Assembly (NCBI GenBank): GCA_964036045.1
Contig: OZ038378.1
Location: 97,774,001 to 97,838,000, forward strand
Origin: Eutreptiella sp. 'Long Island Sound 2002'
Lineage: Eukaryota > Protista > Euglenida
Direction of reading: 5' to 3'
Length of the DNA: 64,000 nucleotides
Shown here: one piece after another, positions 6,316-58,599 of the stretch
How positions within the stretch are numbered: the stretch's first letter is position 1
How the letters are laid out: the number at the start of each line of letters is the position of its first letter
Made by a program: the position numbers and the translations under genes
Notes under the pieces: model-generated
Told to the model about the DNA's origin: nothing
Database searches by the model: none
The model's input: only the letters and a program-made list of their open reading frames with translations

Positions 6316-6524
6316 CTAAGACAACAGAGGCATGGTGCACCACGGATCCCTGTCCCCACGCCCAAGCCCTCTCCAGCTGGCTGGTATAACATCGTTCCCA
6401 CCCCACTACATCCCCTGCCACTGACTGTCACTGTCCCAGCCAGTATCCCCGCAATATTGCTGACTGCCACCACCCCTGCACACCTCCATACCCCTGCTGC
6501 TCACTAATACCAGGTGGGGGGTAC

Positions 6525-6725
6525 CATATGGGGGGTCCCCAACGCTTTAGAGCGGGGGACAAAATCAGCAGTGGCCCACACATGGGTAGATTGGCAACAT
6601 CACGCCTGCCGTCTGGGGTCCCCAATGCTTTAGAGCGGGGGACAAAATCAGCACTGGCCCACAAGTGGCCGGGTTGGCTAGGTCACCCCTGCCGAATGGG
6701 GGGTCCCCAACGCTTCAAAGCAGGG
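6525..6725 (+). repeat. ~83-bp minisatellite of the same family as 2172-2450, followed by a phased A/T-tract array to ~7020
   Basis: ggggtccccaacgctttagagcgggggacaaaatcagcagtggcccac occurs ~2.4 times. Confidence 0.8.
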
Positions 6726-6887
6726 GAGAGTTTTTTGTGTGCTTTTTGGCGGAAATTGCGAATTTGTCTGCAAAAAAAAAAGGACCGCCACGTGTTTTTT
6801 GAAAGCAACTTGGCTTTTTTTTTTTGCCGTAATTTGCGTAACAAAAAAAGTGTAGGTCATGCAACGAAAAAAGCAGAAATCCTGTAA

Positions 6888-36227: not shown

Positions 36228-37830
36228 GTATGCACAGCTCAACAACATGCCGTCACCGGAGAACCTCAAATCTGGACCCCTGCTGTGTGTAGACTGTGGC
36301 ACAATCTGGAACATGGTGTTGGACCAGGCAGATCAAAACTATGGGCCTTTTCCCTAGATAAGATCTTGGTGTACATGCTGCGTCCCATATGTGGCTTGCA
36401 GCGCGCAATCCCACTAGAAACCAACCATCGAACCCTGCTCCCATGGCTGGAAAAGTATATTGTGCGCGACGTGCGCGCCCTCTCTACGGATCGAATGGCT
36501 GTAGGATGCAAACAATGTGGTGTTACGTTGACCCGTGCCATTCACATCCTTGTGTGACGCATTCGACACACGGATCGTGTCTCTAGGCCCCACGTTCGAG
36601 TCAACACTGTACACGCGCACAGCATGTGCCATGTGTTGTACGTGTGCTACAGCACTAGCACCTGCATCCCACTGTGCAAGTACAATAATTTCGTTATGTG
36701 CTTGGGAATGGTACGTCCCATGCAGGTAGACGGCAAATGGGACAAGAGCCACCTTGCATACACCAAGTATATGGCGTCACTACTAACCCGGGAAATCTAC
36801 TACCGTCTACAAGGGTTATCTTGGACCGATGTGACGGATTTGGTTGAGGAGTACAACGCCACATGGAGAGCTTCATGGGAAAATTGGTGCGATGGTTTAT
36901 GGGGACAAGGTTGTCGTCCTCCACACGGATGGCCGGTGCTTGGGGCTGCGATAATACATTGCCCGTAAGCCGCATTCTACGGGCATCAAACTATACATCC
37001 ATGCGGACAATGGTGGGTTGCGTCTTCGACGACTACCTCTACACCGGGATTCCCAGCAAGCTCCGCCGCTTTGGGTGTTGTGTCGGCAAGTATTACGCTA
37101 CGGTACTCATGCGCCTATGGGGGAAGATAATCCCTTATCCACGGTCCCTTGTGCGGGCAACTTTTTCCGAAGTCATGGGCTTGGCGAGCAATTCGCGGGC
37201 CAAAGTCGGATGTTTCTCATGCTCTCAAAGCGTGGTAAGCGAGATGCCGGCCTACCAAGGGCGGCCGCCCTTACGCAGGAGGGCGCCGTGGCGCGGGCAC
37301 TTGTAGCCGGCAAGAACTATGAACTTTCCGTGTACAAGAACCCAAAGGTGGGAAAAAATCCCCCCGTGTGGTACTATGGGGAGGAGGTGCCCAAAGACCG
37401 GAGATGGAGCCCTCTCCCTCTTGTGGTAGCACGCTACCAGGAGTTCTCACCTGTTGTAGATGGTGCCAACCAAATGGCGCTGCACATGCGCCAACTGGGC
37501 AAGCAAACGACGTGGAGCCACGTCGTGCGTGCCTTCATTGTGCGGTACACGGCTAGGAATGCCTTTGCCACCGCCACGGCATCACGGTTGGTGGACGCCA
37601 CGACCACCATTTGGGAATTCCAATAGGACATCCGCAAGTAGCGGTACTTTGGCGGCGGAGATTCAACAACACAACGCCAACCGCTGCGGTCCCTACGGTG
37701 CATGCACGGAAGCGCTTTGCGAGCCGCCTCTGTGTACGCATTGCGTGCAGCAGGACTACGTGTTGGGCGTGCGGGGCATGCGGAAAGCACATGTACATCA
37801 AGTGGTTTGGGGCTGCCCACGACGTGTAGC
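36228..37830 (+). mobile_element. piggyBac-like (DDE_Tnp_1_7-type) transposase pseudogene, most complete copy
   Basis: Motifs occur in piggyBac order across frameshifts: CLGMV...W...TREIYYRL, GLR*YIARKPHSTGIKLYIHADNG, GCVFDDYLYTG, CAGNFFRS (ADNFF-like), VVARYQEFSPVVDGANQ...W...NAF, and C-terminal CVRIACSRTTCWACGACGKH. Confidence 0.85.
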
Positions 37831-39029
37831 CTGTCACTGGCGTGACTGGGCGGAAAGAGACGGTCAAGGCGGCAGAGGCCTCTGCCATCCCTACCCATGG
37901 GACTGGTACCAACCCTGGTGGAACTACTGTGTAGGCTGGGTACCCAAATGTGACCCCCCCCCCGACAGTTGACTTATTGCATGGAACTTTGTTGCACAAA
38001 CTGTTGTAAGCGTCGCGCATGTATTTCATTTGCGTCTGTAAGTGTGTCCCCAGAGCCCTACCAATCGTTCTGCCCGTTGATGACGTCATGCGCGTCGTGA
38101 AACGTTTTTTGAAATTTGTCCCCAACGCGTGCAACATTTCGTGTGTCTCTTGTCACAACTGATGTCTCCATGGCCAAAGGAATATGAACACGAAAATGTA
38201 CACTACAAACCTGCAACGCCTAAGCCAAAATTTGGCCCGGGGCAACCATATCTTTGTCCCCCGTGACGACCATGCCGGCGACCCTCAGGAAGGCAAGTGT
38301 TCTCGCCTTTACCCCATGGTTCAATATACCAATCGATAGCTGCGAGCAACCGCCACCGGTGCACGGATACCTGTCGCCTCCGACCACACAGCTGAGGGGA
38401 CATGCTCAGTCAATGGTTTGGAACAGGGATGGCCGCCATTGCACATATTGTGCCCACGACCGTGGCGGTCAACAGCGACCCGACGCCGTGAGGTCGGCAG
38501 ATTCCAATTGGGGGGGCGGGGGGACAACGCAAGCGGGGCGGTCAACGACTTCCAGTTCGCATCAAATTGGTCCAGTGTTAGGATCGGGCCTGGGAAGGGC
38601 CGCCCAGTGCAAGCGGTGTAGCGGTCGCCCGACGGGTGATGTACTTAGACAATACACGGAAGCCAGACTGGGGTGCAGCCAACTCCAAAAGGAGCGCTAT
38701 CAAATAGGGTGCCGGAAAGAGGGCCTCCGCATACGTACGGATGGCGTGCACCTTTCTTTTGTGGACCGCCGGGAGGGAAGCATGGTCCATTGTCTCCGAG
38801 AAACAGGCCGGGATGATGGGGGAGGATGACATCCATTAGCGCAACAGGTCGTAACACGTGCTGTCCCGAAGACTGGTGGCACCACTGAGCCGAGCCGTAA
38901 AGGTAGGACATAACATGCCGGCCGGGTGCAATCCGTTGGCGCATCGTCACTGCCCCATGAAGACATTGTCCCCCCAAACGTCCACACGGGTGCACATGTG
39001 AGGATGAAATGGTGGCCCACGCAAAGTAG

Positions 39030-39138
39030 AACGGCAACTCTAATTATTGCTCTTGTTACTGTAGCACCGGCGCATGTGTGCACAAGTCTGCTACGAAAGG
39101 GAATTGTCTACTTTGGGGGCATGGTTGGGGTGTGTGTA
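39030..39138 (+). pseudogene. SWIM zinc-finger remnant that continues at 33701-33581 (minus) across the inversion
   Basis: NSNYCSCYCSTGACVHKSAT is CxCx(n)CxH. Un-inverting gives WGVC|KRDLPLRVNGFEKLRAMRKW in one frame. Confidence 0.5.
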
Positions 39139-39328
39139 GTGGGATTGCGCGCTGCAAGCCACATATGGGACGCAGCATGTACACCAAGATCTTATCTAGG
39201 GAAAAGGCCCATAGTTTTGATCTGCCTGGTCCAACACCATGTTCCAGATTGTGCCACGGTCTACACACAGCAGGGGTCCAGATTTGAGGTTCTCCGGTGA
39301 CGGCATGTTGTTGAGCTGTGCATACCAG
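39137..39328 (-). mobile_element. 5' stub of the piggyBac-like transposase, cut at an inversion breakpoint
   Basis: Reverse complement of ~36228-36416, ending at cccacTA. Confidence 0.8.
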
Positions 39329-40820
39329 GAAGGGGGTGCTTAGCTGTTGGACTAGGTTAGCTGTACAGCATACAGAATGCGTGGGACACTAAAAAATTCC
39401 AAAAGCCCTCAACAAAGATAGCACCCATATCGCTGTACACGCGCAAAATGACTTGACGCCTAACGCCCGAAACACAATGGGAGCCAACGTGCGTAACACG
39501 CAGAGCACGAAGAACGCGGGGACACCACATCTTGCTTGCAACAAGTTGAATGTGACAGTCCGGACAGGGGTGGGGAGGGGGGTAGAAAAAAAATCCTGGT
39601 ACCGGCGTACAGCTTTTTTTGGGGGGGGTACCCCCGGAGGAGGAGGGGGGTAAAAAAACAAATTGGCGCGAGAATTTTTTCCCGACCCCTAAACCTGAAA
39701 TTTTCTTAAGTCTACCCCCCGTGTTTGGCTTTGGAAGGTGCAATGAGGTTCAAGGGTGGGGTCAGAGGGTTAACAACTTCTTGGGCAAAGGGCTGCAGGT
39801 GCGGCAACTTGTGGGAGGGGGTGGTATCCTCACGGGGGGTGGGGGTTGCTTGTGGGCTAGGGATGGCCAAAACCGCTGCCCTGTCCCCGACGTCTGGCTC
39901 CCTGTGGGCGTCCAGAAAATTGGCATAAAGATACCGTCTCACATTCCGCAGGGCAATCAGTTGGCCTCTGCACGGGGGTTTGAAAAGGAGGGGGGTGACC
40001 TCAAGGTCCCCAAGGGGTCGGATGAGGTAGATGTGGGGGGAGGCGCCAACATCCACCAAGCGGGTGGCCACAATGGGTACATGTTGGGGGTCATAGTTGA
40101 CGGTGCCTTCGTTGGGGCATGGATATTTCAGCCAATATGGGTGGTGTTTGTGTTTAAGGGCACAAAGACCCCCGGTCTGTTTCGGCTGTAGTGCAGCGCC
40201 CCACCCGGCCCTCTTATCGGCAGGATAGAGTCCCCAGATAAGGCAATACACCCTATCTGGGGCGAGAAACAAAAGCAGCAGCATTGAAGGACAATGGTGA
40301 TTGATGTCCATTTTGGCCGTTCTGCAAGTTGCCCAAGCCTACAGTGGACCCCACAATGTCATGTCCCCATTGCCTTCTCGCATGCTGGTCGATGATCGCT
40401 ACGCCACAATGGCTTGACAACAAAGATTGGTTCTCAATGAGGCTACGGTGTGTGTGTTGGTGTGTTCGTACGTCTTCGTATGTGTGTGAATGGTGCAAAT
40501 TCCGGCCTTACGCCGTTCTTGCGCGCACATGGCAAAATTTTCTTTTCTCCTATGGTTTTATCTGACTACAAAAAATGTATAGTGAAACGCGTGTTTATCA
40601 CTGCACCGCATGCACATCATTCGTCGTGACCCCCCCAACCGTAGCCCCATGTCCTACCAACCTTCATTGGCTTGCCAACATTTCGTCCGATTGCGGTTCT
40701 CCACAACCATGCAAGCAACAAAGCGTGGATTGCGAGTCCCTAACCCCAACTCAAAGGGCGCAACAATACTGACCAATATGGGGTTCTGAACCACAAAAAC
40801 GAACAAAGGAGGACTCCTGG

Positions 40821-42044
40821 GAGAACTCCTGGTAGCGTGCTACCACAGGAGGGAGAGGGCTCCATCTCCGGTCTTTGGGCACCTCCTCCCCATAGTACCA
40901 CAGGGGGGGGGTTTTCCCCACCTTTGGGTTCTTGTACACGGAAAGTTCATAGTTCTTGCCGGCTACAAGTGCCCGCGCCACGGCGCCCTCCTGGGTAAGG
41001 GCGGCCGCCCTTGGTAGGCCGGCATCTCGCTTACCACGCTTTGAGAGCATGAGAAACATCCGGCTTTGGGCCGCGAATTGCTCGGCAAGCCCATGACTTC
41101 AGAACAAGTTGCCCGCACAAGGGACCATGGATAAGGGATTATCTTCCCCCATAGGCGCATGAGTACCGTAGCGTAATACTTGGCGAAACAACACCCAAAG
41201 CGGCGGAGCTTGCTGGGAATCCCGGTGTAGAGGTAGTCGTCGAAGACGCAACCCACCATTGTCCGCATGGATGTATAGTTTGATGCCCGTAGAATGCGGC
41301 TTACGGGCAATGTATTATCGCAGCCCCAAGCACCGGCCATCCGTGTGGAGGACGACAACCTTGTCCCCACAAACCATCGCACCAATTTTCCCATGAAGCT
41401 CTCCATGTGGCGTTGTACTCCTCAACCAAATCCGTCACATCGGTCCAAGATAACCCTTGTAGACGGTAGTAGATTTCCCGGGTTAGTAGTGACGCCATAT
41501 ACTTGGTGTATGCAAGGTGGCTCTTGTCCCATTTGCCGTCTACCTGCATGGGACGTACCATTCCCAAGCACATAACGAAATTATTGTACTTGCACAGTGG
41601 GATGCAGGTGCTAGTGCTGTAGCACACGTACAACACATGGCACATGCTGTACGTGTGTACAGTGTTGACTCGAACGTGGGGCCTAGAGACACGATCCGTG
41701 TGTCGAATGCGTCCCACATGGATGTGAATGGCACGGGTCAACGTAACACCAAATTGATTGCATCCTACAGCCATTCGATCCGTAGAGAGGGCGCGCACGT
41801 CGCGCACAATATACTTTTCCACCCATGGGAGCAGGGTTCGATGGTTGGTTTCTAGTGGGATTGCGCGCTGCAAGCCACATATGGGACGCAGCATGTACAC
41901 CAAGATCTTATCTAGGGAAAAGGCCCATAGTTTTGATCTGCCTGGTCCAACACCATGTTCCAGATTGTGCCACAGTCTACACACAGCAGGGGTCCAGATC
42001 TGAGGTTCTCCGGTGACGGCATGTTGTTGAGCTGTGCATACCAA
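40821..42044 (-). mobile_element. 3'-truncated copy of the piggyBac-like transposase
   Basis: Reverse complement of ~36228-37448. Includes the 247-aa ORF at 41301-42044. Confidence 0.85.
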
Positions 42045-43914
42045 GAAGGGGGTGCTTAGCAGTTGGACTAGGTTGGCTGTACAGCATACAGAATGCGTGG
42101 GACACTAAAAAATTCCAAAAGCCCTCAACAAAGATAGCACCCATATCGCTCTACACGCGCAAAATGACTTGACGCCTAACGCCCGAGACACAATGGGAGC
42201 CAACGTGCGTAACACGCAAAGCACGAAGAACGCGGGGACACCACATCTTGCTTGCAACAAGTTGAATGTGACAGTCCGGACAGGGGTGGGGGGAGGCAGG
42301 GTAAAAAAATCTTGGTACCGGCGTACAGCTTTTTTTTGGGGGGTACCCCCGGAGGAGGAGGGGGGTAGGAAAAAAAATTGGCGCGAGAATTTTTTCCCGA
42401 CCCCTAAACCTGAAATTTTCTTAAGTCGACCCCCCATGTTTGGCTTTGGAAGGTGCAAGGAGGTTCAAAGGTGGGGTCAGAGGGTTAACAACTTCTTCGG
42501 CAAAGGGCTGCAGGTGCGGCAACTTGTGGGAGGGGGTGGTATCCTCACGGGGGGTGGGGGTTGCTTGTGGGCTAGGGATGGCCAAAACCGCTGCCCTGTC
42601 CCCGACGTCTGGCTCCCTGTGGGCGCCCAGAAAATTGGCATAAAGATACCGTCTCACACTCCGCAGGGCAATCAGTTGGCCTCTGCACGGGGGTTTGAAA
42701 AGGAGGGGGGTGACCTCAAGGTCCCCAAGGGGTCGGATGAGGTAGATGTGGGGGGAGGCGCCAACATCCACCAAGCGGGTGGCCACAATGGGTACATGTT
42801 GGGGGTCATAGTTGACGGTGCCTTCGTTGGGGCATGGATATTTCAGCCAATATGGGTGGTGTTTGTGTTTAAGGGCACAAAGACCCCCGGTCTGTTTCGG
42901 CTGTAGTGCAGCGCCCCACCCGGCCCTCTTATCGGCAGGATAGAGTCCCCAGATAAGGCAATACACCCTATCTGGGGCGAGAAACAAAAGCAGCAGCATG
43001 GAAGGACAACGGTGATTGATGTCCATTCTGGCCGTTCTGCAAGTTGCCCAAGCCTACAGTGGACCCCACAATGTCATGTCCCCATTGCCTTCTCGCATGC
43101 TGGTCGATGATCGCTACGCCACAATGGCTTGACAACAAAGATTGGTTCTCAATGAGGCTACGGTGTGTGTGTTGGTGTGTTCGTACGTCTTCGTATGTGT
43201 GTGAATGGTGCAAATTCCGGCCTTACGCCGTTCTTGCGCGCACATGGCAAAATTTTCTTTTCTCCTACGGTTTTATCTGACTACAAAAAATGTATAGTTA
43301 AACGCGTGTTTATCACTGCACCGCATGCACATCATTCGTCGTGACCCCCCCAACCGTAGCCCCATGTCCTACCAACCTTCATTGGCTGGCCAACATTTCG
43401 CCCGATTGCGGTTGTCCACAACCATGCAAGCAACAAAGCGTGGATTGCGAGTCCCTAACCCCAACTCAAAGGGCGCAACAATACTGACCAATATGGGGTT
43501 CTGAAACACACAAACGAACAAGTGGAACACCCCGCTTTTCACATTGTGTACCGCTATTCCACTGCCGGGTTGCCACACGGCCACCAAACGTTTGCGGTGA
43601 CGCGGTTCCACGCTTCGCCCACACTCATTGCTGAGTGGGGCACCGCTAGCGTAGCAATGGTCATGTAAACGAAGTTCTCCGAAGGGAAGGGAAGTGCTAG
43701 CCGGACCCAAATGAGGCACGTGGATGGCAGCTGTTCCAGGCATTGTTTTTCCACACCCACAGCGCACCATCACCGTCACTGCATGCGTTCACACAGCACA
43801 CGCCACAGTGGTGGAGGCGCCGACATAATTCATGGCAATTGCAGCCTAATATCTTATGGCCCGTGTGGGCCCACTTTTTCGACAATGGCTGCCACTGAGG
43901 CATCGGGACTCAGG

Positions 43915-45826: not shown

Positions 45827-46971
45827 GGTGTGGAGGTACATGCTCGAGGCCGACCACGGCGTAACTGAGGAGGAGTGCTGCTCGTGGCTTGCTTGTTGCT
45901 TCCTTACTTGCTTGTTAGCTAGCTCCTCCTCTTTGATCAACGGATCTTGACCCTCTGGCGGGGGGGTTCCTAGAAGTGTGGCTGCAGCGGGTATTGTTGC
46001 GGCGGTGGGTGGGGTACCGCTGGGGCGGTCCCATTCGAGGGTCCCAGATCAGTCCTAGAAAACCGTGTGCGTCTTCATGCGGTAATCCCACAGCCCCGCC
46101 TCGCGGTCCCAAGCCTCATGCGGCTGCTGCTGCTGCTGCTACTCATGTGCGTACGGCGGATATTCCTCGTGCAGCGGGTACTGTGGCGGGGACTGCGGCG
46201 AGTATTGCGGCAGGTACTGCGGAGGATAGGGCGGCACTAGCGGCCGCTGCAAGGGCATAGCTTGTGACATAGAATACATAGTAGATGCGGTGAACACGGT
46301 TGTTGTCCCCGGAGCCAAAACGAGAGACAGTGCCTAGAACGTCTAGAACGCGCACAACAATTAAGGAGGGCGCCAGGGACAGTCGAAGAAACAACGTGTA
46401 TGACCTGCGTAGCACATAAAGCAGCACACCTTGTGGCGCTTGCATGCTTGAAACTCTTGGAAATTGAACCGCCGCACCAGCCTCCACGTCTTCTGCTTGG
46501 GCTGGTGCTCTCGGTTTCGGGCATCACTTCGTTGCGGCGCTCTACTCTACTCCTGTTATCCTAGAGCCTAGGTGCCAGCCTTGTGAAATCAAACTTTCGA
46601 GCCAAAAACTCACCGGTGGCGCCCACGGGCGGGGGCGCCAAGTCCGGAGGTGCCCGGCCAAAACTGGGCCTTTTGTGCCCCAAACCAGCCTTTCGTGGCC
46701 CAAAATTGCCGCGCAACCCGGGCAAAACAGACAAAGAGGGGAAACAGTGGCTACACGCCACGTGCGCCACAATATGTCTGTGAAACGTCCAAAAATGGCC
46801 AAAAATAACCCCAATGGAGGGCCGTTGGTGTTGAACTACCCCGAAACCAAGAACGGGCCGTATCTTGCCCTGCTTGCCTCGAAACCTGATGCGGAGGGCA
46901 CCTAGTCCACCCGCAACCCCCCACTTTTTGTGGTTTTCAAGCCTCACCATCGCCCAACGAACCGCCTAGAC

Positions 46972-46999
46972 CTTAGGAGGCCCATAGTGCCCCCTATCG
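46972..46999 (+). repeat. Left terminal inverted repeat
   Basis: One mismatch to the reverse complement of 58342-58369, with weaker A/T-tract similarity extending inward. Confidence 0.9.
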
Positions 47000-47873
47000 C
47001 TTTTTCAAAAAAAAATTCATGTCGTGCACAGAGCCTAGCCTCTCTGCTGCATAGCCAAGCGTAACGGGGGGGTGCTTCCCAGCGTGGGTGTATGGGGAGG
47101 AGGAACGACACGCAATTTAGGGGTGCGAAGCAGCCAAAAGGCACCATTTTGGGCACCCACAGCATGCAAGCGCAACCACTGCTTTTTCCAATTTTGGAGG
47201 TCTGAGATACCGAAAATGGACCAATCGCACCATAAAACTATGTTTCACAGTCTGATATCACAAATGGAGCACGTAGTTGGCAACGGCACGTGCTGCGGTT
47301 CTTCTAGCACCCGTGGTATTGTAACGGCAATCATGACCTTACATGCACTGAGTGTGAAGAAGGTGTCCCCTATCACAACAGAGGCACAGCACCTGTACAA
47401 AAGGAGGGTGCAAGGCAGCATTTCTGAAAGGCTGGGCTCTGCGGAGCCCACAAACATGAAATTCACCAAAAACAGGGGAAACAGTACAGGGTTGTACACC
47501 AACACAACAATGTACCGGCAAACAGGTAGTAACAGGGCGGTAAATAGGGAATTCCTACTGGCTGGGCTCTGCAGAGCCCAGCTCAATACAAACACCACAA
47601 AGCACCCATGAATTACGCTATTGATAAACAAGCCAGACCACCAGTGTAGTAATGGCTACAATAGGCATCGGACTATACCCCCCCCCCCCCGCCCTCCCCC
47701 CCCCCAGGGGAAAAATATCCCGGTCCAATAAGCGATAGACCACTAGAGCACCGGTCATACACAAGGCATGGAAGCTGTACACACTAGTTGACGAGTCTAA
47801 GGCACGAACACACACAAAACAAGGCACAGAAGTTGTAAAAACCGTTATGTGCGCTGTGGGAGGTCCGCCAGAG

Positions 47874-48370
47874 CAACAAAATTGGATGCTGTATTGACTG
47901 CAGACTGATGTGTCCCCGGATGTGGTTCACAAGCACCAACTAACACCTGGCCACACAAAGACTGGTACCCCTTCTAAATTCCGAGCAAATGTTGAACTAT
48001 CGATAAATGGTTCACACCAACAAAAACCAGCCACAAATCGCATCAAAAAATTAAGCATCGCACAGTCGACAGTGTCAGGCCACTGTCCAACATACGCACT
48101 GTCAACCGCTGCAGAAATGGCCAGAACAACAAAATTGGATGCTGTATTGACTGCAGACTGATGTGTCCCCAGATGTGGTTCACAAGCACCCACTAACACC
48201 TGGCCACACAAAGACTGTTCCCCCTTCTAAATTCCGAGCAAATGTTGAACTATCGATAAATGGTTCACACCAACAAAAATCAGCCACAAATCGCATCAAA
48301 AAATTAAGCATCGCACAGTCGACAGTGTCAGGCCACTGTCCAACATACGCACTGTCAACCGCTGCAGAAA
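47874..48370 (+). repeat. ~250-bp tandem duplication inside the transposon
   Basis: acaacaaaattggatgctgtattgactgcagactgatgtgtcccc occurs at ~47874 and ~48125. Confidence 0.9.
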
Positions 48371-49180
48371 TGAAAAGACACAGGCCCAACAGATCAATGC
48401 AATTGAGCATAGATGACAGCGAGGAATAAAATGTGGCTCAGCGATAAAAAGCAAACCTGTGCCCAAACTACTGACTTGAAATTGGACTAAGGGCATACCT
48501 GGTAAACTCGAAATGACAGACACGTTCAGCTGAGCTCTGCAGGGCCCAGGAACGGGCAACAGATAATGTCAGGACCAAATCAGGGTTACAAAGGGCATCT
48601 GGACTTTGCAGTGCATGGACTGGTGAAAAAATAGCAAGAATTAAAGGATCTGGGGGTCATAGACACAAACCTGGCACCGTATGTGGACCACAATTGTGAG
48701 AAAACTCGACAGTTGGCACACTGTGTCAACGAGGTACGTACCAAAAGAAATGCCAGAGCACAATGTTGTGCTTATACAACCAAATTCACACAGGGACAAT
48801 ACTGCACTGTTGAGATGAAAGCAGCACTGCGTACCACCAGGAGGCATGCAAATTGGCCCGAAACAGCATTCTGGGCTCTGCAGAGCCCATCAGTACAAAA
48901 TTCTTCATATTCGGGGGCAAATCAAGCAAATCTGGCAAGCTGGGCTTTGCAGAGCCCAGCTCAATGCAAATTAAAAAATGAGCGCCAAATTCAGCCACAA
49001 ACACGTACAGCGTCAAACAGGCACATCACTCACTGTCCCACAACCATTTGGGACTGCACAGGACAGGCCCAGTCCCATCAGGCGCTCAGAAAACCAGCAC
49101 AGTAACACGGTTGCGTCTGTGGTTGTATGTCCAGTACGGTCCAGCGACAGTCATGATCCAGCGGTATGTGGGGCCTCCAG

Positions 49181-50529
49181 TCACTTGCCGTTGCTCTTGC
49201 CGTTGCTCTTGGACAAGCCAACCCGGACACCACGTTGCAGGGTGGCCTGCAGGCCCTCCGCTGCCCTGTTTTTCTGCGATGGGGACGCCCCAGCGGCTGC
49301 CGTTGCCAACTTATCCTCCTCTTCTTTCCTCTTGCGATTTGCTCGTTCGTCCTCTTTTGCCTTTTTCTCCTTCTCCTTCTCCTCCTTTTTACGTTGCTTC
49401 TCCCGTGCCTCCTCTTGCTTCCGCAACTCGCGCTCAGCCTTCCCATGCTCTTTTTGCCGCTGCTTTTCGGTGTTTCTCCCCTTTGGCTTGGGAGTTTGCG
49501 GATCCGGCACCTCCTCGACTTCTGACTCACTCGTGTCCGCGTCTGCTGCCTGATCAGGGGACTCTTGCTGGAACAGCGGCTGCCCGGTGCTTGCCCAGTG
49601 CGTGACACTCCGCCACTCAACATCCTCCTCCGTGTCCCCTTTCCGGACGATCGTCTTCAGCAGGTTCACCACATCAGCTGCATTGTAGGGACCATCAGAT
49701 AGTACACCCCATGCACAATTCAACGGGACAGGAAAGTGAATACAGCCCAAACTGATCAGGTCGGGGCGGCGGCCATAGTACAGTGCCCACAGGCGGCGCG
49801 ATGCATCACCATCCATGTGCGTGTCGTCAGAGTCGTCGTTGGGGTCCTCCAGCAAATTCACCAACCACCACAAAATAGCCAGACCCAGCCACAGACCTTC
49901 AGTGAACGACTTTTGTGTGAGGAAGTGCGGCACTGCAGGGCCCAGCCCATGGGTCTTCACAAGGAACAAGGTTGACTGCTCAAACAAATCTGGCTCTTCT
50001 CGGCGCCCCAGGTGGTACAGAGCCATGCGCAAAGCCGTTGGGTACAAATCTTCCAATTGCGAGCGCAAGTGTTGTTCCACAGCGACCAAATCCCCATGGT
50101 GTCCATGAAAGGCGCCAAGTACCCCTTGAGACAGCACACGCACGATCTGCGCACCAGGGATCCACCCTCCAAGCCGCGGGACTTCAACAATGACGACATT
50201 GTACTTCAGCATTTTGATCTCATTTGGCACTGCGGTCACCGATCCATCGTACGCCCAAATTTCTCCAGATTCTGACCCCTTGCCAACATTGACCTTTGCC
50301 ACCTCGCCACCAGACACCTCAACAGCTGGGTGCAACACTAGTCTCACAAGCAGTCTGCGATGGGCTTCGACATCTTCTCGATCGCTGACCCATAGACCTG
50401 CCTTCAACGGCGCCTCGAGCGGTGGCCAGGGCGTGCTCTCGCTGTACTCCCAGCTCCCTTGCCATGCACCGAAATTCGCCAGACGGTGACTAAACTTCTT
50501 TGAGATGCGAGCCACTTCAGTCTTTGTGC
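49181..50529 (-). CDS. Cargo gene, last exon (~449 aa: unknown globular region plus acidic and K/E/R-rich tail)
   Basis: Uninterrupted ORF. A strong polypyrimidine acceptor (cttccctcctgccctcctctatggctcctgtacacacag|GC) is phase-compatible with the donor at 51761. Confidence 0.7.
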
Positions 50530-51761
50530 CTGTGTGTACAGGAGCCATAGAGGAGGGCAGGAGGGAAGCGATCCACCAAGTCACAGCGATCTGGCAAAGC
50601 GTAAATTTGCATTTTGTTGGATCCTGGGCTCTGCAGAGGCCAGTAATGTCAAATTGGTAACATGAAGGCCAAAATTGGTCACTGTGGTTCATCTTGGCAC
50701 TGCATTGCCCAGCATGACTAAATTGGCAACTTAAGGGGGTGGCGTGGGGGGGGGGGGGTCGTGGGACATCAATAGGCCAGGCCGGAGTGGTCAACAGGTC
50801 CAGCGTCCAGGAAGCTTCAACAGGTCTAGCGTCTCTGTACATGCAGTCAATTGGCATCCCAGGGGATCCTGGGCTCTGCAGAGCCCAGAACTCTCTAAAT
50901 GGTAATATGGCGTCTGAAATTTGGTCAACTCCCTCGATCTGGGCTCTGCAGAGCCTAGCATGACGAAAACGGTGATACAGGGGGTGTCCCGGGGGGGGGG
51001 GGGGGGGCTTGGACATCATTAGGCAACAGTGCACCGGTAATCGGGAGTGAAGTTGCGGAAGTTCGGACAATCCAACAGATCCAGTGTCTCTGTACATGCA
51101 GTCAATTGGCATCCCAGGGGATCCTGGGCTCTGCACAGCCCAGAACTGTCCAGATGGTAATATGGCGTCTGAAATTGGTCACCTCCCTTCATCTGGGCTC
51201 TGCAGAGACTAGCATGACCAAATTGGTGATTTAGGGGGTGTTCCGGGGGGGGGGGGGGTTGGGCATCATTAGGCAAGAGTGCACCGGTCATCAAGACTGA
51301 AGTGGCGGAAGTTCGGACAATCCAACAGATCAAGCGTCCCTGTACATGCAGTCAATTGGCATCCCAGAGGATCCTGGGCTCTGCAGAGCCCAGAACTCTC
51401 CAAATGGTAATATGGCGTCTGAAATTGGTCAACTCCCTCCATCTGGGCTCTGCAGAGCCTAGCATCACCAAAATGGTAAATTAGGGGTTGTCCCGGGGGG
51501 GGGGGGGGGGCTTGGACATCATTAGGCAAGAGTGCACCGGTCATCATGAGTGAAGTTGCGGAAGTTCGAACAATCCAACAGATCCAGCGTCTCTTTGCAA
51601 GCTTGCATGCAGTCAATTGGCAACCCACGGGATCCTGGGCTCTGCAGAGCCCAACAGACCCAAACAGTCACACTGAAATTGGTCATTACACTTCATCCAA
51701 GCTCGCCGTCGCAACGGCCCAATCACAACAAAAGGCAGGGGCTTACAAAGCAATAGCATAC
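50530..51761 (-). other. Predicted 1232-nt intron built from ~250-bp palindrome-doublet units with poly-G/C runs
   Basis: C|GTATGC donor and CAG acceptor, both phase 1. Unit periods are 245-261 bp. Confidence 0.6.
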
Positions 51762-52868
51762 GTCGTGAAGGGTGGATGCGCTCAACCGGCATGCCGGGAT
51801 GACCAAAGTGATACAGCCACAACTCCCCAGCGCGGAGCTCCTTTGCCAGCTTCTGGAAGCCCGGTACTGTACTCTTCGGCGAGGCCATGTAGTTGCATAC
51901 GCGCCACAAATTGTCGGGTTGCATTCCAGCAAAGCATCGCATTGTGTAAAGGGCAATCACCTGCTTGCGTTCCACCATCTTCCCGAGTGCGTCCGTGAAG
52001 GTGGCACCACAGGTCAGGGCCATATGGGCAGCTGGCCTCATTTGCTTGACGATTGTCTCCGTGTTCCTGGACTTTGCAGTCAGCCCGCCTCCACGATTGC
52101 CTCACACATCAAGGTGACAACTGTCTTCTTGCATTGTGTGTCCTCCGCCGCCAGTTGTAGGAAATTGTTCAACAGTTGGGGTACACTGCTCTCACGCCCA
52201 CTGTGCTGCGCCCTATTGTGTTGTCCGGCCAGCTTTCGCCTGATCTCGACGGATGTATCAAACTTGATGATGCGCACGTCAAAGTTAGTCATCCAGTCCT
52301 CGACCTCGCCCATCCTTGCTGTCACATCCTTGCAGATTTCATCACACGCCGCAACGCCGTGTTGGCCTCCAATCACCCACAGGGCTCCCACTGAATACAG
52401 CAGCATGGCACGTCACACAGGGCAGGCCACGTAGCCAATTACGCTGATCGAGTTGCGTCGCAACAATCCCATACCTTTGTCTTCCCAAACCAGAAGCTGC
52501 AGTCGGCCATCGGGGGGGTTTGCTAGTAGGTCCTCCTTCACCTCCGCCACGTGGTCCCAATCAATGAGCCTGGATTGGCCATACTCCATGCACCTGTCAA
52601 TCTTCAGTTCCTTGCGCGGCACCTTCGCTCTCCGCACCTACACGTAGTTTTGAATGGCCAGTACGGTTGTGGAGTCCTTGATACTGCCCATCTTCCTGGC
52701 GACACGACCGTTGTTCACCACTTGCGAGGGAGATTGACTGGCCTGGCTGGCCCCAGCAATAGTGCTGCCCTGTACAGCATCCTCTATGGAGGGCTCTGAC
52801 TGCAGTGCGTCCACTTTCTCGGCTTCCAGTGTGTCCATCGCTGGTGTCTCAGCGGTGTTGCCATCCAT
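51762..52868 (-). pseudogene. Cargo gene, 5' exons: ParB/Srx (DGQHR-like) domain protein with one in-frame TAG and one frameshift
   Basis: ATG at 52868, TAG at 52640-52638, then YGQSRLIDWDHVAEVKEDLLANPPDGRLQLLVWEDK. An 84-nt GT-AG intron (52474-52391) follows, then VGALWVIGGQHGVAACDEI...KLAGQHNRAQ. A 1-nt frameshift lies near 52083. Confidence 0.65.
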
Positions 52869-53379
52869 GGCAACGTCGTTTGGTATGTCACACATGGTCC
52901 AAAAACACACGGACTTTACAGGACAAATCAAGTCACCAAAAACAGCACAACAATCACACAGTTCAGAGCATCAATGGTGGCAAATGGCAGATTTGGACAG
53001 CAAATTAGTCGGATCAAAGCAAGCAAATTGGCACCCACATGGGTTGAAATAGCCAAAACTGTCTTCAAAACAGCAAATCACTGCAGAGGCACCTCAAGTA
53101 CAATGTCCAGGGCACATTGATGGTCACAGCATCAAACAGGCCCACTAAAACGTCACTCGTTGACACAGGTATGAAGCAGCTGGAAAATTGGGCCTGTGCA
53201 AATGGCCTGCAACACCACAGCCAAACCTGCTTGTGGCAATTTAACTCCAATAATCATAACAGTGAGTACAACAGTGCCAGGCACACCTCTTCGAGGGTCA
53301 CACAGGCTGACGCAGCGGGTGCACACTATAATACGAAAGAATGGAGATGTGTGCACAGATCAAAGCACGAAGATGGCAT

Positions 53380-53870
53380 GGTCCAGGACTGGCCCAGCCC
53401 TAAGAAAGGAACAGCAAATGACCAGATGGGAGTACATATCGGGCAGTGGCGACAGGCTCGGCTCTGCAGAGCCCAGAGTAACCACAACCGGTAATACGAC
53501 CCCTTAAAACTCAGTGTCAGGCAAAGGTGGGCTCTGCAGAGGTACAGTGATAGCAGGGGTGTAAACATCAAATTTGCCTGTCGGGGGGGGGGTTGCATTG
53601 CCACCCCCCTCGATGAGCAGTCTGAGTCTATGAAAGCAACAAGAAAGCGACTGAAAATGACCAGATACGGGTACATATCAGACAGTGGAGACCGGCTGGG
53701 CTCTGCAGAGCCTAGAGTGTCAAAAACCAGTATTACAACCCCTGAAAACTCAGTGGCGGAGAAAGCTGGGCTCTGCAGAGCCCAGACTCTTGGGCAACAA
53801 TAACGGGCCTATACACAGCAGATTGGGCTTTCTTGGGGGGGGGGGGTCTGCATTGCCACCCCCCCCCGGT
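53380..53870 (+). repeat. 239-bp tandem duplication, each copy with a palindrome doublet and a G-run/C-run hairpin
   Basis: aaatgaccagat...tacatatc...ggctctgcagagcc occurs twice. ggggggggg ttgcattgcca cccccc lies at ~53583 and ~53835. Confidence 0.85.
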
Positions 53871-53871
53871 A

Positions 53872-56006
53872 TTAGTCCGAATCTATCAGGTCAAATTCAC
53901 GCAACCCCTCACTGAGCACAACAGGTACAGGGCCATCAGACAGGGCATCAACATCTACAGCATCCCTCGCCCGGATCACAGGTACGCCATCCTCAGGGGG
54001 GGCACGCACATGATCAATGAATATTGCATTTGGCACTGGGGGAACAATGTGCTCCATTGCAATTGGTATGAGCCCAACTCTTTCTACAGCTGCCCGGGCC
54101 TCGCGGCGGTTCACAGGTGGCCTAAGTGGGATATGTTGACGTATGTAAGCCATGGCATCATCGCGGAGCCCTTGTCCACCTACTAGGGTGCGCAGAAAGC
54201 GCTTTAGAATAGATTTCATGAACACAACTGTTAGGGTACCCCCGGTTCCCTTTTCGGGGAACACGTACGTTGTGTCTCTTTCTGCCTCAACCACACTAAC
54301 TGGACCCGAGGACCATCGCACAGTTGGATGCTCCTCCCGTCTTGCACCACGCATGAGTGCCCATACCCTGTCGCGCACCTCAACACACACACTTTCGGAG
54401 AGGGACTCCGTTGCACGTGCCACTGACGGGGGGGCATGGTGCGGAGTAGGGCACCAGCCTCATCAGCCGTGTGCTTGTCGGGGTGTTGCTGGCACCGTGC
54501 CCGCAATTTTGCAAGCAGGGCCTCACAACATTCCTCCACATGGGCAGCACCAAGCGTGTCGTCGTGCCATTGTGTATTGTACAGAAGTGCACAGCATATG
54601 GTACGGACATAGTTCATTTTTGCTGCAGCTGGACGAGCTAGGTCAACAAGCAGACCCACGCGGCGTTGGAGTACGCACGTGGCCACTATACCAGTCCCGT
54701 CGGCGCGCCTAGTCCAAGTGCAATTGGGCACTAAGTGTCCTACTACAAAGATGGCTGGGAGGTAATAATTCAGGAGGGATTCAAGGCCCCGAAGGGTGCG
54801 CAACCCATCTTGTGTGTTTAGGGCTGCTTGGTTGGCGCGTCCCTCAAACAGGGTAATTTTCTGCCGAAGTTGTGCCCGTATGTCCGGGGCTGAGAGAAGG
54901 AGGGCAGCGATGGTTTTCTCTATTACAATGAGTTTGGGATGGTTATATATGCGCGCACCGGCCCCAAACACGGGAGCGGTGATGTACGAAAACCGAGGAA
55001 AGAATTTACGCCAAATGATATTGCAAACATGTTTGTAGGGGTGCCAGAGGCCGTAAATCAACGAGATACCCCGCAACCAATCCGGAAAATTCCAATCAAT
55101 GGTTGCTCTACAGTACAAAAATTTGAGCACCCGGTCGTGGATGTTGCAATCAACGAGCAATGCCATAGCTTTTTGACAACGCCGTTGGGTAGTGCGTAGC
55201 ATATCGAGGAGATCCAAGAGCTCTTGGTTCTGACCTGTACGGGACTCATATATGCCGAATGGCTTCCAAACGAGTTGCTGTCTACCAGCCTCCCGGGCAA
55301 CATCGAGGGGGGCACGGATGGTTCTCCGAGAAATGGGTGTATTGCACATATCAGTGCACACCTTCAACATTTCTCTGTGTTGTTGAACAGCTGCCATGGC
55401 CACTGTGTCCACCCGGTCCACTAGGTCACGCAGACTCGGGTGGCCAAGAAAATGAGGAAGGGGGGTTGTGTGCAACACCGCTATGGCGGTCACATCTAGA
55501 CAGACATTGGGTTTCACCGGATTGGCCCGAAACTGGGCATGCCACCAGTTGTCCACCCACACCACAATATCACGGCGAACAATAATACGCCACAGTTTCC
55601 GGAACTGCAATGCCCCCTGGTGTGCAATAGACAACCGGGATGGTTTGGTGAGACCAGCGTGCACCAGCTTGCGGCTGTCTGCCCGCATTACAGCAATGGT
55701 GCTCTCACCACTGGGGACGGCCGCTTGTGGCAACGCCATGCGACACATCCCCAGCCATACATAATAGGCCTCCTTGGAAAAATTAAGTAGCCAACGCGGC
55801 CATTGTTTTCGTGCCAACACCTTGCGAATGCGGTCGAGCGTAATGCGGGTCCGCTTGTTGACACGTAGACCCGCACAGAATTTTATGAATTCCTTCGCCA
55901 CACCATGGCGCACAGCCGACAATATCATGTGGCGACCAGTGCGCCATTGTGTCGTACAAAGAGACCGCATGTAGCTGACATGCAACGACATAGAAATCGG
56001 TGCCAT
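53872..56006 (-). CDS. Putative DDE transposase (DUF6589/Academ-like or KDZ-like), with a 1-nt frameshift in a homopolymer at 54428-54434
   Basis: 591-aa ORF with WVDN (~55550), LLVD (~55150), YGLWHPYKH (~55045) and HVEECCEALLAKL (~54535). It continues in another frame as the 183-aa ORF 53872-54423 and lies inside TIRs with a TSD. Confidence 0.65.
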
Positions 56007-56295
56007 AGTTATAAGACAGTCCGGGTGGCAAAACAGGAAAAGGTGGTGACCAGAACAGGTAACTAGAGGCGTAGACTAGCACACAAAAGGGGGCATAATG
56101 GGAAGTGGTGAAGGTCTGGGCTCTGCAGAGCCCAGCGTCCCGTAATCAGTAATGGCGGGCTTTGTAATAGACAAAGGAAAAACGGGGAGGGACGTGCCAC
56201 GAGAAAGTAATCGAGAAGGGGTAAAAGTAGCATTTGGCGCAAGCTGGGCTCTGCAGAGCCTAGGGTCCCGAGAAATGATAGTTGGGGGTTCATAC

Positions 56296-57041
56296 CACCC
56301 ATTTGGGGAGTAGACCAACCACTTCATGCATCACAGAGTTTTCCGGTATTTGGCCGGGGGCATATCAGGTAGTAATGACCACCGTGACCGATACCGACCA
56401 TCCTTCTTAACCGGGATAGTAGATGGTTGTGCGGGGGCAGATGAAGCCACATCCGGCGACAATCCTACATGCGCATGTGGCAAAAGTGAGTACCTGGGGG
56501 TATGTCGGTTGTCCGCATAAGCGGCAGTGGGCAACAGAGAAGTGCGCGGGGGTTGATGCAGGAGGGAACTCCTTGGGGGTAGTGCATTATCAGCCAGGGG
56601 CAGCGGGGCCCTAACTGACCGCCTACCACTGGAGGTGACGGAGCTGTGCCTCAGGGCGGGGGGGGTGCCTCGATGTGGTACAGTCACTGGTGGCAACAGG
56701 CTGTATTTTGACTGCCCACCGGTGCGGTCTGCTTCCACGGGTAATGGAAGGGACCTTACGTGCTGGCGATGGGAGGGGTGCCGATCAATCTGTGTAAGTG
56801 TGGGTTGGTCGGCATCCGGGGGAGGAAGTGGCCGAGGAGGTGGGATACGGGGATGGGGAGACAACTCAACAGGGGGACGTGATTGTGGATTCAGTGTGTC
56901 CAGGATCAATGCAGCTCGCTCCTCGCTGCGTGACAGAAAATGGGATCGGCATATCCGATCCCCTTGTTGCCATGTGACGAGGGGTTTGCGCATTGGGTTC
57001 CGCAATGCAAAACGGAATCGTGCACGAAGCCCCCAAATGTA
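56296..57041 (-). CDS. Pro/Arg-rich upstream exon, probably part of the transposase gene
   Basis: Acceptor gtgcag|TAC, in the same frame as the 591-aa ORF. Donor TG|GTATGA at 56295 and acceptor gcatgtcag|C at 55975 give a 321-nt in-frame intron. One TGA lies at 56333-56331. Confidence 0.4.
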
Positions 57042-58341
57042 CTGCACGAATCAATGTGGCTGGTCACCACTGTTGTCCCTCAGCAACTCCATTGTCTTTG
57101 GAGTCAATGGGTCATTGAGGGAGGCCTTTGGTGGGGTTGGCTGGTCCTTGGGGACAAGCTTTGGTGGCCGCGGTGGGGATGGGGGTGCTGACCCGGTAAA
57201 CATAATCGCCTCTTACCCGGCGAGCGTAGCTGTAGCACGAGCTGCTGTTCCACTGGTTGATGGGACCGGTAAGGGTACAGGTCCTACAGCCTCATCTCCC
57301 TCAGTATCCTGGCCGGAACCCGGTACATCCACCTCCGTACGTCTAGCATGTGGGAAATCAGCCATGGCTGCTGTAAAAGGAAGATAGCATGTTACATGTA
57401 CTTAATATACGGGACGTATGACCAGATAGTAAATGTACGAGCACTGCACAGTATGCAAAAAAACCAACTGCAATAGATTAGGGTATATTGCAAACAATGT
57501 GTCCTCAAACTCCCATAGCATCGGACGCACCACAACAATAGAAACACTACCCCACTGGACCCTGTTGGACTACACTGCGTGCAAACAGTCCAAGGCTTGT
57601 TGCAGCTCACTCCTGAATGGCGACTGTCATACTTACACAATGCCACGGGTGCACCATTGTAATACACGATACAACAGCAACGCGGCAGAAACGCATAGAA
57701 AAAAATACTACCAGACCACATGTTGAATACGTTTCGAAGTGTCATAGCGCTATTATGTCACAGAAAAGGGGGCAAAATGGGAAGTTGTGAAGATCTGGGC
57801 TCTGCAGAGCCCAGCAAACAGGGAGACCCTAATAAGCACCCCTCAAGCACCAAATTTGTGAACTCTGGGCTCTGCAGAGCCCAGGTTGTTAAAAAATCCT
57901 AATATAAGCCTTGTTTAGGCAGTTCCATCTAGATTATGTGATGCCTTGTGTGGTAAGCGTCTTGGATCATTGCCCACTGGTAGTGTATGTAGGAGTTGTA
58001 TCCTTGTATACTGTTACTATTGACCTATCCGGGGACAATGTTTAGGTTGAATATGTTACAATGTCAACGAGAGTATACCACTTAACCCAGCGCCATATTG
58101 CGTGGCCAATTGACCACTGTATACATGTGCCGATTGTTGTACCGGGGGTAGGTACAGAGGGTATAACTTGTAACCTGGGCTCTGAAGAGCCCAGATATCT
58201 AAGATGTGTAATATTGGGGCCAGAAATGACTTACACAGCTGGTCTGGGCTCTGCAGAGCCCACCCTGATTAAAAAATGCAAATTTGAACCCCCATTTTAC
58301 CATACGCAAAACATCACCCATCACCCCTTTTTTCGCTAAAA

Positions 58342-58369
58342 CGATAGGGTGCACTATGGGCCTCCTAAG
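58342..58369 (-). repeat. Right terminal inverted repeat
   Basis: Partner of 46972-46999. Confidence 0.9.
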
Positions 58370-58599
58370 TAGACCCCTGCACCATTGGTCCCTTGGTGGA
58401 GCTGGAGGGCAGCACGGCCCGCGGACGATGGGGGCCAACGGTGGGTCTGCCAGGGTCCCCGTGGCGAAAAAAAATCATTTTTTCCAAAGTTGTTCCTAGA
58501 CCAATTGGGATGCTCAAACAAGTGCTTTTAGGCCGTTTTGAGCCCGTGGTGACGCGGTGTGTGCCATGCAAAATCCCAAAAAGCCTTGAAAATGTGCCG

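Follow-up and report, generated by a model that had tools for sequence, protein, structure and literature searches.

Lineage-specific palindromes bracket the genes of a eukaryotic DNA transposon and may be recognition sites for a factor of its own

Introduction

What purpose could a short palindrome serve when it recurs throughout the non-coding DNA of one mobile element, and what would read it? This question is raised by an 11,398-bp element lying at positions 46972 to 58369 of the window, i.e. the whole 64,000-nucleotide stretch of contig OZ038378.1 (assembly GCA_964036045.1, Eutreptiella sp. 'Long Island Sound 2002') that was analysed here. The element carries four genes, all on the minus strand and in the order ORF C, ORF B, ORF D and ORF A (ORF, open reading frame), of which ORF B is the predicted transposase. 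A first-pass annotation, made from the letters of the window, had noticed that the palindrome often occurs in doublets 69-70 bp apart, had considered these to be likely cooperative protein-binding sites and had suggested a parS-like array, to be read by a ParB-like domain encoded in the element.

Based on the distribution of the palindromes in this element, on their divergence between its copies and on the comparison with distant relatives, we propose, with moderate confidence, that they are cis-acting recognition sites for an element-encoded, probably dimeric and sequence-specific factor, and that together they would constitute a self-recognition and regulatory module, not a chromosome-style partition site. 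The idea of cooperative protein-binding sites is in this way strengthened: palindromes diverge more slowly than their surroundings, their arms are kept where the transposases are only ~34% identical, and each lineage examined with enough flanking DNA has a palindrome of its own. The parS/ParB reading as originally worded is not supported, given that the element has no detectable ParB domain, that the arginines of the relevant box are replaced and that there is no ParA-type partner.

Results

Distribution of the palindromes

The exact sequence GGGCTCTGCAGAGCCC occurs 10 times in the window, against 0.00 expected from dinucleotide shuffles, and the number of copies rises to 20, 22 and 24 when up to one, two and three mismatches, respectively, are allowed. 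Counts of degenerate copies range from 22 to 26, and the placement statistics given below use 26 sites. The pattern first reported as 23 copies is therefore real, with the qualification that only 10 are exact and the others are variants with one to three mismatches. The real recurring unit is a 20-bp perfect palindrome, CTGGGCTCTGCAGAGCCCAG, which contains GGGCTCTGCAGAGCCC, has no CpG and carries two inverted CTGGGC half-sites, 14 bp apart from centre to centre. Scans for the exact 20-mer gave no match among viral contigs (IMG/VR), metagenome contigs (JGI) or the text of 8.4 million papers.

All copies of GGGCTCTGCAGAGCCC are confined to positions 47434-58261, which places every one of them inside the terminal inverted repeats (TIRs; 46972-47013 and 58328-58369), as had been claimed. 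The palindrome was not found in ~110 kb of DNA outside the element from the same genome, made up of the remaining 52.6 kb of the window and the flanks of the loci L001, L003, L004 and L005; as far as this DNA shows, the motif is not common genome-wide independently of the element. Within the element, the non-coding DNA (5,867 bp) holds 24 of the 26 sites and the ORFs (5,531 bp) hold the other two (binomial P ~1e-5). These two are a 3-mismatch match within ORF A, which is probably due to chance, and a site at the 3' edge of ORF D. Palindromes are present in both subterminal regions and in all three intergenic gaps, and their number varies between copies of the element (25 in L001, 22 in the window and 12 in L005).

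The mismatch scan also recovered the spacings that had been described. Eight pairs are 69-70 bp apart (seven at up to two mismatches, and 53459/53529, whose partner has three), two further decayed partners stand at +69 (48601 and 50695), and two pairs are wider (47434/47564, 130 bp; 56118/56246, 128 bp). Expressed as 20-mers, the left subterminal pair (47432-47581) starts at 47432 and 47562, and two doublets lie downstream of ORF A (48530-48959), 48530/48599, which is decayed, and 48871/48940, each with a distance of 69 bp. The pair in the gap between ORF C and ORF B (56116-56263) has its nearer member ending 110 nt upstream of the transposase ATG, while upstream of ORF C the right subterminal region (57795-58263) holds the doublets 57795/57865 (70 bp) and 58175/58244 (69 bp).

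Constraint on the palindromes and origin of the doublets

Between copies of the element, the divergence of the palindromes is roughly half that of their flanks. In L005, 12.4% of the palindrome positions have diverged, against 21.1% of the positions in the 40-bp flanks (p=6e-4), and in L003 the corresponding values are 7.1% and 17.3% (p=4e-5), the test being limited to positions where the window and L001 agree.

The spacers of the doublets had been described as looking unrelated, and this turned out to be wrong. Aligned without gaps, the spacers from seven independent doublets share 36.7% identity, against a shuffled null of 26.2 +/- 1.3%, and seven columns of the flanks carry more than 0.6 bit, the null being 0.015 (with recent tandem copies collapsed). 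The shared signal includes oriented A-rich submotifs on the plus strand, AAAnTGG ~20 nt before the palindrome and AAAnnGGTAAT ~8 nt after it. Additionally, many doublets are part of larger tandem units. In the gap between ORF D and ORF A (50573-51700) there are 4-5 units of ~250 bp (Tandem Repeats Finder period 250 x 3.3 copies, 88% match), each formed by a 69-70-bp palindrome doublet followed by a run of 13 to 17 G, with nine palindromes in total (50624 to 51635). The gap between ORF B and ORF D contains two super-units of ~239-255 bp (53402-53886) with 70-bp doublets at 53457/53527 and 53696/53766, each with a G-run. Next to the 56118 site, L001 contains a further ~70-bp unit. Because the spacers are related, the super-units form arrays and an extra 70-bp unit exists in L001, the doublets are diverged tandem copies of a ~70-bp unit. 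Homology of the spacers had been named beforehand as a sign of simple duplication, and it is there in a distant form. The claim that motif and distance are conserved more than the intervening sequence was nevertheless borne out, since the distance within pairs has drifted by at most 1 bp and the palindromes are near-perfect, while the spacers have decayed to ~37% identity.

Several other repeats were observed in these intervals. The G-runs that follow the second palindrome of the super-units (G10-G17) are located at 50746-50758, 50991-51007, 51245-51258, 51495-51510, 53583-53592 and 53835-53846, and C-runs are found at 47678-47705; such runs of at least 10 nt are also common elsewhere in the window (19) and in L004, and they may relate to G-quadruplexes, to slippage in replication or to the assembly. 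The segment 47867-48372 is a 253-bp tandem duplication (97-98% identical) present only in the window copy, L001 having a single unit (18122-18374) to which both aligned segments map.

Related lineages and their own palindromes

The comparison was extended to the genomic context of distant relatives of the transposase or of ORF D (L002, L004, L008, L029, L030 and L031). Together with the window family these make seven lineages, and each of them has its own multi-copy palindrome of 16-20 bp. The set was counted as five palindromes unrelated to one another plus three variants with CTGGGC arms. L002, from another sample and with a transposase 34% identical, has four 20-bp sites of the CTGGKCGCGATCGCGCCCAG type on both sides of the transposase gene, two upstream (one of them 74 nt before the ATG) and two just past the stop codon, 68 bp apart. 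L008, also from another sample, a brackish surface-slick metagenome (the literature describes SRR20314591 as a brackish sea-surface slick metagenome), carries homologues of ORF D and ORF A arranged as in the window, and the gap separating these two genes holds two copies of CTGGGCGAGAAAGCGCCCAG at a distance of 78 bp. Shuffles of these two loci expect 0.00-0.03 such sites. Both lineages keep the arms CTGGGC-N8-GCCCAG and a pair 68-78 bp apart while the inner 8 bp change, which indicates that the outer arms and the ~70-bp pair are conserved over deep divergence. Flanking submotifs (TTACCATTT upstream and CCAATTT 14 nt downstream, on the gene strand) look alike by eye across lineages, with scores near shuffle level, and their conservation is tentative.

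The other relatives have different palindromes. L004 and L029, from the assembly of the window family and each with a transposase 31% identical, carry 22 copies of TATCGAAATTTCGATA at spacings of 25-100 bp and three copies of GTGCTGGCACCAGCAC, respectively; an ORF D homologue is present in the former, and the gene order in the latter is transposase, ORF D, ORF A. In L030 (transposase 29% identical) there are 21 copies of TTTCGTAACNGTTACGAAA, five of them in tandem immediately before the transposase ATG and five immediately past the stop codon, and in L031 (26%), where an ORF D homologue is again present, nine copies of CAACGGGATCGATCCCGTTG follow the same layout. The palindromes of all four loci flank genes, with ~0 expected from shuffles, and the start codon of the transposase is preceded by a palindrome, at a distance of 45-120 nt, in six lineages. 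Only the CTGGGC clade has the fixed pair at 68-78 bp, the other lineages having spacings of 20-100 bp, so the 69-70 bp distance is not a general requirement, the doublets of the window being tandem duplicates. ORF D travels alongside the transposase in the window family, L004, L029 and L031, and alongside ORF A in L008. No recurrent palindrome was found in the short contigs L006, L007 and L009, which have little flanking DNA.

Three palindrome specificities (those of the window family, L004 and L029) coexist in one assembly, ERZ25074135, which argues that the reading factor would come from the elements themselves and not from a shared host factor.

A search of metagenome contigs with the generalised doublet CTGGGC-N8-GCCCAG...N44-62...CTGGGC-N8-GCCCAG returned 18 loci (L011-L028), which were set aside, as none has a homologue of an element protein by tblastn. 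Their pairs are 64-100 bp apart, lie mostly in GC-rich contigs and are usually identical repeats (L020 has three at 71 bp); they may be CRISPR-like (clustered regularly interspaced short palindromic repeats) or other unrelated tandem arrays. Separately, positions 263-3143 of L029, 7 kb upstream of its transposase, hold a satellite-like array of 24 copies of TGAATTATTTCA with conserved flanks and steps of 41, 61, 82, 103 and 123 bp.

The transposon and its transposase

The limits of the element (46972-58369) are the coordinates at which its end-to-end alignment with L001 and L005 stops exactly. L001 (7442-19265) aligns at ~94% identity from the first to the last base, L005 (2366-12830) at 76-85% along the element, and L003 aligns partially. 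The left TIR (46972-47013, plus strand) is 42 nt long, starts with CTTAGGAGGCCCATAGTGC and is 88% complementary to its inverted partner at the right end (58328-58369, minus strand), and the termini are identical in type across L001, L003 and L005. The element is flanked by a 5-bp target-site duplication (TSD), TAGAC, at 46967-46971 and 58370-58374, and 5-bp duplications are also found at the two other full insertions (AGAAG in L001; GTTGT/GTTTT in L005). In one ENA assembly, homologues of the element proteins are spread over >50 contigs of Mb scale and form clusters of 83-118 near-identical members. All these features characterise the element as a high-copy, recently active, cut-and-paste TIR DNA transposon of a eukaryote; it is previously undescribed.

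ORF B (54231-56006, minus strand) encodes 591 residues and belongs to a family with 1,405 representatives at 50% clustering, 260 of them at E<=1e-30. Pfam has no family matching any of 38 diverse members, and a PDB sequence search gave no match. D152, D286 and E363 are invariant in the 38 sequences, and the AlphaFold model (pLDDT 84.8, pTM 0.78) has the order of an RNase H-like core, with an alpha-helical insertion domain before the E. Its top fold neighbours in the PDB are the P element, Hermes (including the complexes 4d1q and 8sjd), ISCth4, Transib and RAG1; the top eight matches are to P element, Hermes and ISCth4, with probabilities of 0.57-1.00 and marginal E-values (4.5e-3 to 6e-2). The invariant D/D/E on an RNase H-like core and the consistency of the neighbour list are the reasons for identifying ORF B as a transposase, which according to the model is a DDE enzyme with an insertion domain (the group of P, hAT, Mutator and Transib/RAG1). 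Among that group, a 5-bp TSD is known from Transib only, but the element's TIR starts with CTTAGG. The ORF B family, with its 5-bp TSD and CTTAGG TIRs, may represent a eukaryotic DNA transposon superfamily that is undescribed or unmodelled, judged by Pfam and the PDB.

The remaining proteins are without recognised domains. Among reading frames of at least 60 residues in 46900-58450, no element protein has a Pfam match beyond chance level (E<=0.1), and long ORFs outside the element have none save RVT_1 and DnaJ fragments. ORF A (49181-50545, minus strand; 454 residues) has no Pfam domain and has homologues after ORF D in L008 and L029. Its C-terminus (49181-49400) is a K/E-rich low-complexity tail with weak CAF1A-acidic-like matches only; such tails are typical of nuclear or chromatin-associated proteins. 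ORF C (56331-57365, minus strand), which is proline-rich and also has no Pfam domain, encodes 344 residues in L001 (8443-9477) and a truncated product of 238 residues in the window, where both ORF C and ORF D are broken.

ORF D and its resemblance to ParB

ORF D (51616-52970, minus strand) is better kept in L001 (12959-13477 and 13484-14278) and must be the gene to which the first-pass annotation attributed a ParB-like domain. Its conserved blocks are ELxID..GQxR..LLVW and (G/S)xQH..A..VxIIK..LAGxHNR. By eye, ORF D in five lineages follows the motif order of the ParB N-domain (a hydrophobic strand, GQxR, an acidic helix, a hhhW strand represented by LLVW, (G/S)xQH..A, VxIIK and LAGxHNR). The presence of such a domain was not confirmed: the homologues of the five lineages have no ParB, Srx or DndB match at E<=10 in Pfam, NCBIfam, PHROGs or PADLOC, two PDB profile searches gave no match, and the AlphaFold model (P0237), built on a shallow alignment of nine rows, is unusable (pLDDT 34.5). 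The box equivalent to the GxxRxxA motif, which in ParB binds cytidine triphosphate (CTP), reads GGQHGVAA, GGQHAFE, SGQHIVEA or SSQHICKA, with no arginine. No ParA-type ATPase was found with Pfam (E<=0.1) among the reading frames of at least 60 residues in 46900-58450, and to our knowledge the palindrome has no similarity to the parS consensus. The resemblance of ORF D to ParB is accordingly treated as a lead, and the system is not classed as ParB/parS.

The two halves of ORF D are split at a matching place in five lineages (13477/13484 in L001, 618/739 in L008, 13180/13211 in L029, 3190 in L031, and L004, where an in-frame read-through runs from 6226 to 7416), and this conserved split is probably an ancient conserved intron. 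Three L004 palindromes (6902-6960) are inside the putative intron, which recalls the VANC-target repeats in VANDAL introns.

Other repeats in the window

Outside the element, a different palindrome, GCCCACAAGTGGGC, occurs with conserved flanks at 2173, 2278 and 2383 (a tandem triplet in steps of 105 bp), at 6657, and at 60068 and 60153 (a pair 85 bp apart, situated 1.7 kb beyond the right end of the element); it probably comes from a different repeat family, likewise with paired palindromes. The region 33700-43521 contains ~2.7-kb repeats of 98% identity, both direct and inverted (33700-36416 versus 41854-39137; 34748-37448 versus 43521-40821), which carry the recurrent palindromes GGGGGTACCCCC and AAGGGCGGCCGCCCTT, and this complex is probably another nested or duplicated mobile element.

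Discussion

The palindromes have multiplied through duplication in tandem, both of a ~70-bp unit and of super-units of 240-250 bp; such duplication accounts for the 69-70-bp doublets and for the differences in copy number between copies of the element. In the mechanism that we favour, the protein that reads the sites would be encoded by the element and would co-evolve with them, each family acting on its own copies only. Its likely effect would be autoregulation or anti-silencing of the element genes, as in VANC/VANDAL or KorB/RK2, and an added role in helping to assemble the transposition complex is possible. The leading candidate for the binder is ORF D, the second being the N-terminal helical domain of the transposase. 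We infer here that a protein binds the palindrome, which protein this may be and what its binding would bring about.

Several observations weigh against this proposal. No element protein has a recognisable DNA-binding domain in the profile libraries searched. The symmetry of the palindrome and the symmetric changes of its inner bases fit a hairpin of RNA or single-strand DNA as well as they fit a site for a dimer. Sites located just downstream of stop codons (in L030, L031, L002 and for ORF C of the window) are left unexplained by a promoter-operator model alone, and the 68-78 bp spacing, besides varying among lineages, does not correspond to integral helical turns. The divergence test keeps some ascertainment bias, since the sites were defined in the window copy, and the compared copies are partly dead, so that the signal of constraint could partly reflect mutational bias (the palindrome having no CpG).

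A bolder version of the proposal, which we regard as rather unlikely, is that an undescribed transposon superfamily carries in ORF D an extremely diverged ParB/Srx-like protein, and that this protein reads lineage-specific parS-like palindromes across the element as a private address for regulating, shielding from silencing or pairing its own copies.

The palindromes could instead be bound by the N-terminal domain of the transposase and assist or stimulate the transpososome, in the manner of the subterminal repeats of En/Spm (bound by TnpA), Ac and Hermes. ORF B belongs to the P/hAT-like fold class, members of which use multiple subterminal sites, its N-terminus is a conserved helical region of ~140 residues, motif and transposase co-diverge among lineages, and there are palindrome pairs in both subterminal regions (47432-47581 and 57795-58263). 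The placement of the sites makes this a doubtful explanation. They are not concentrated within a few hundred bp of both ends, as they are in En/Spm, Ac and Hermes: 16 of the 26 are more than 1.5 kb away from both ends, no site comes nearer to the left TIR than 460 bp, the sites are most crowded in the element's centre and the TIRs themselves are without the palindrome. In the short contigs of the relatives, furthermore, the sites bracket individual genes.

A role as structure signals, read by shape as RNA hairpins (in untranslated regions, at transcript ends or in the processing of a multi-gene transcript) or as cruciform or single-strand DNA, seems to us improbable. In its favour, the hairpin is stable (-14.1 kcal/mol, with an 8-bp stem and a 4-nt loop), its inner stem changes on both sides between lineages (TCTG/CAGA versus GCGA/TCGC), the centre of the L008 palindrome is 6 nt non-complementary and loop-like, sites are found shortly before start codons and shortly after stop codons, and all four genes are co-oriented. 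Nevertheless, there is no Rfam match, and RNAalifold applied to nine doublets only pairs the two identical palindromes together, with no covariation and an unfavourable covariation term. The L004 hairpin is weak (-6.6 kcal/mol), and a stem with a purely structural role would not usually keep the sequence of its outer arms so strictly across deep divergence. Three hairpins for three families in one host would also be unexplained unless an element-encoded reader exists.

A true ParB/parS module, in which ORF D would load at the palindromes as a CTP-dependent clamp and spread, in order to condense, pair or segregate the element or its excised copy, we judge to be very improbable. It would account for the ParB-like motif order of ORF D, for multi-copy palindromes of 16-20 bp and tandem arrays like those of parS, sopC and OB, and for the position of the array 50573-51700, which abuts ORF D; the published red-algal precedent, moreover, rests on a similarly weak match (HHpred E=0.29). 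Against it stand the negative outcome of the four hidden Markov model libraries and of both PDB profile searches, the missing arginines of the CTP box and the lack of an encoded ParA-like ATPase. The palindrome is unlike the parS consensus as we know it, and partition is of no obvious use to a chromosomally integrated transposon.

The least credible of these explanations is that the palindromes have no function and are passively carried as a by-product of tandem duplication and gene conversion in a minisatellite of ~70/250 bp. The distant homology of the spacers, the super-units of variable copy number and the occurrence of palindrome pairs at 64-100 bp in unrelated metagenome tandem arrays are in its favour. 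Such a neutral minisatellite is already disfavoured, given that it leaves unexplained both the spread over six separate non-coding intervals and the near-perfect palindromes beside indel-free spacers that are ~37% identical, and that the palindromes diverge less than their flanks. Additionally, the arms are kept across lineages of ~34% identity, and other multi-copy palindromes occur independently in every related lineage. Two further candidates were rejected, nested insertions of miniature inverted-repeat transposable elements (the sites are at matching positions in all copies, none occurs outside the element, and the units themselves have neither TSDs nor TIRs) and a CRISPR array, to which the ~70-bp period had pointed (there are only doublets, with mutually related spacers, in a eukaryotic TIR element with TSDs and no cas domains).

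If element-encoded recognition of these palindromes is correct, its interest goes beyond this locus. Sequence-specific self-recognition by a transposon has been experimentally established essentially only for the VANDALs of Arabidopsis and has been proposed for the red-algal Plavaka, and the element described here would be a third system, unrelated in its transposase and originating from aquatic microbial eukaryotes. Its signature is a clean one, with palindromes of 16-20 bp that switch sequence between lineages and an architecture and two accessory genes that stay constant. These natural cognate and non-cognate sites open two questions, namely how cross-talk between families is avoided and whether ParB-like folds operate in eukaryotic mobile DNA. 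Should the ParB/Srx-like reading of ORF D be true, plasmid ParB/KorB would have a counterpart in eukaryotes, and self-recognition of the VANC kind would have been invented a second time, independently. The transposase family, which has a 5-bp TSD, 1,405 representatives and no model in Pfam, merits description in any case.

Comparison with known systems

The closest functional analogue would be VANDAL/VANC, from the Mutator-like elements of Arabidopsis, where VANC binds family-specific motifs in the non-coding regions of VANDALs that form rapidly diverging tandem repeats (PMC5735166, PMC10398659). In both cases family-specific motifs occupy the element's own non-coding DNA (in VANDALs, upstream of genes and in introns), the motif regions are tandem repeats whose copy number varies from one copy of the element to another, related families differ in their motifs even within one genome, and a conserved accessory gene travels with the transposase. 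The VANC motifs are ~9-bp and non-palindromic, whereas those described here are palindromes of 16-20 bp. VANC has DUF1985/DUF287 and VANDAL a Mutator-like transposase, to which the element proteins have no Pfam match, and for VANC both binding and hypomethylation have been demonstrated, while the present system is known from its sequence.

The closest structural precedent appears to be the giant Plavaka of red algae, in which a ParB-like gene, PAG3, is found beside tandem inverted-repeat arrays; the likeness of PAG3 to ParB is an HHpred E=0.29 with no InterPro domain, and the authors propose that PAG3 binds its own transposon (bioRxiv 10.1101/2025.02.11.637652). Both are eukaryotic multi-gene DNA transposons in which an accessory protein has a weakly ParB-like N-terminus and inverted-repeat arrays lie by its gene. 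Plavaka elements, however, are of the EnSpm/CACTA type, 17-19 kb long and equipped with PAG1-3, whereas the present element has a transposase of P/hAT-like fold with no Pfam family, a length of 11.4 kb and a 5-bp TSD. PAG2 is a methylase with a SET domain and PAG3 joins its ParB-like part to a 2-oxoglutarate (2OG) oxygenase, a domain that is not detectable in ORF D. The PAG set is also set apart by its domains more generally, as no Pfam match to Transposase_21/KDZ, N6-methylase, SET or 2OG-oxygenase exists in any frame of the element. In Plavaka the repeats are confined to one gene-adjacent array, while here palindromes fill all non-coding gaps.

Among transposons with repeated short sites, En/Spm, Ac and Hermes have multiple subterminal sites, read by the transposase or by TnpA, within a few hundred bp of their ends. 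They share with the present element the TIRs, a reader that is (here, putatively) an element protein and a related fold class of the transposase. Their sites cluster at the ends, whereas most sites here are internal and bracket each gene.

In bacteria, multiple palindromes in RK2 (the OB sites) and in sopC are located partly in promoters and partly in tandem repeats. The KorB-OB system of RK2 would be the closest bacterial analogue, KorB being a member of the ParB family that silences RK2 genes from palindromic OB sites (PMC11790492). The likeness to KorB-OB, ParB/parS and SopB/sopC is that of a mobile element with multiple palindromes (13-16 bp in those systems) that are read by an element-encoded dimer regulating its own genes. 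In those bacterial systems a ParB CTPase domain can be demonstrated and a partner, ParA/IncC, is present, whereas the present element, integrated in the chromosome of a eukaryotic host, has no detectable ParB domain, lacks the CTP-box arginines and encodes no ParA. The system described here thus differs from VANDAL, Plavaka and KorB in its transposase family, in accessory proteins that have no recognisable domain and in the 16-20-bp palindromes that bracket every one of its genes.

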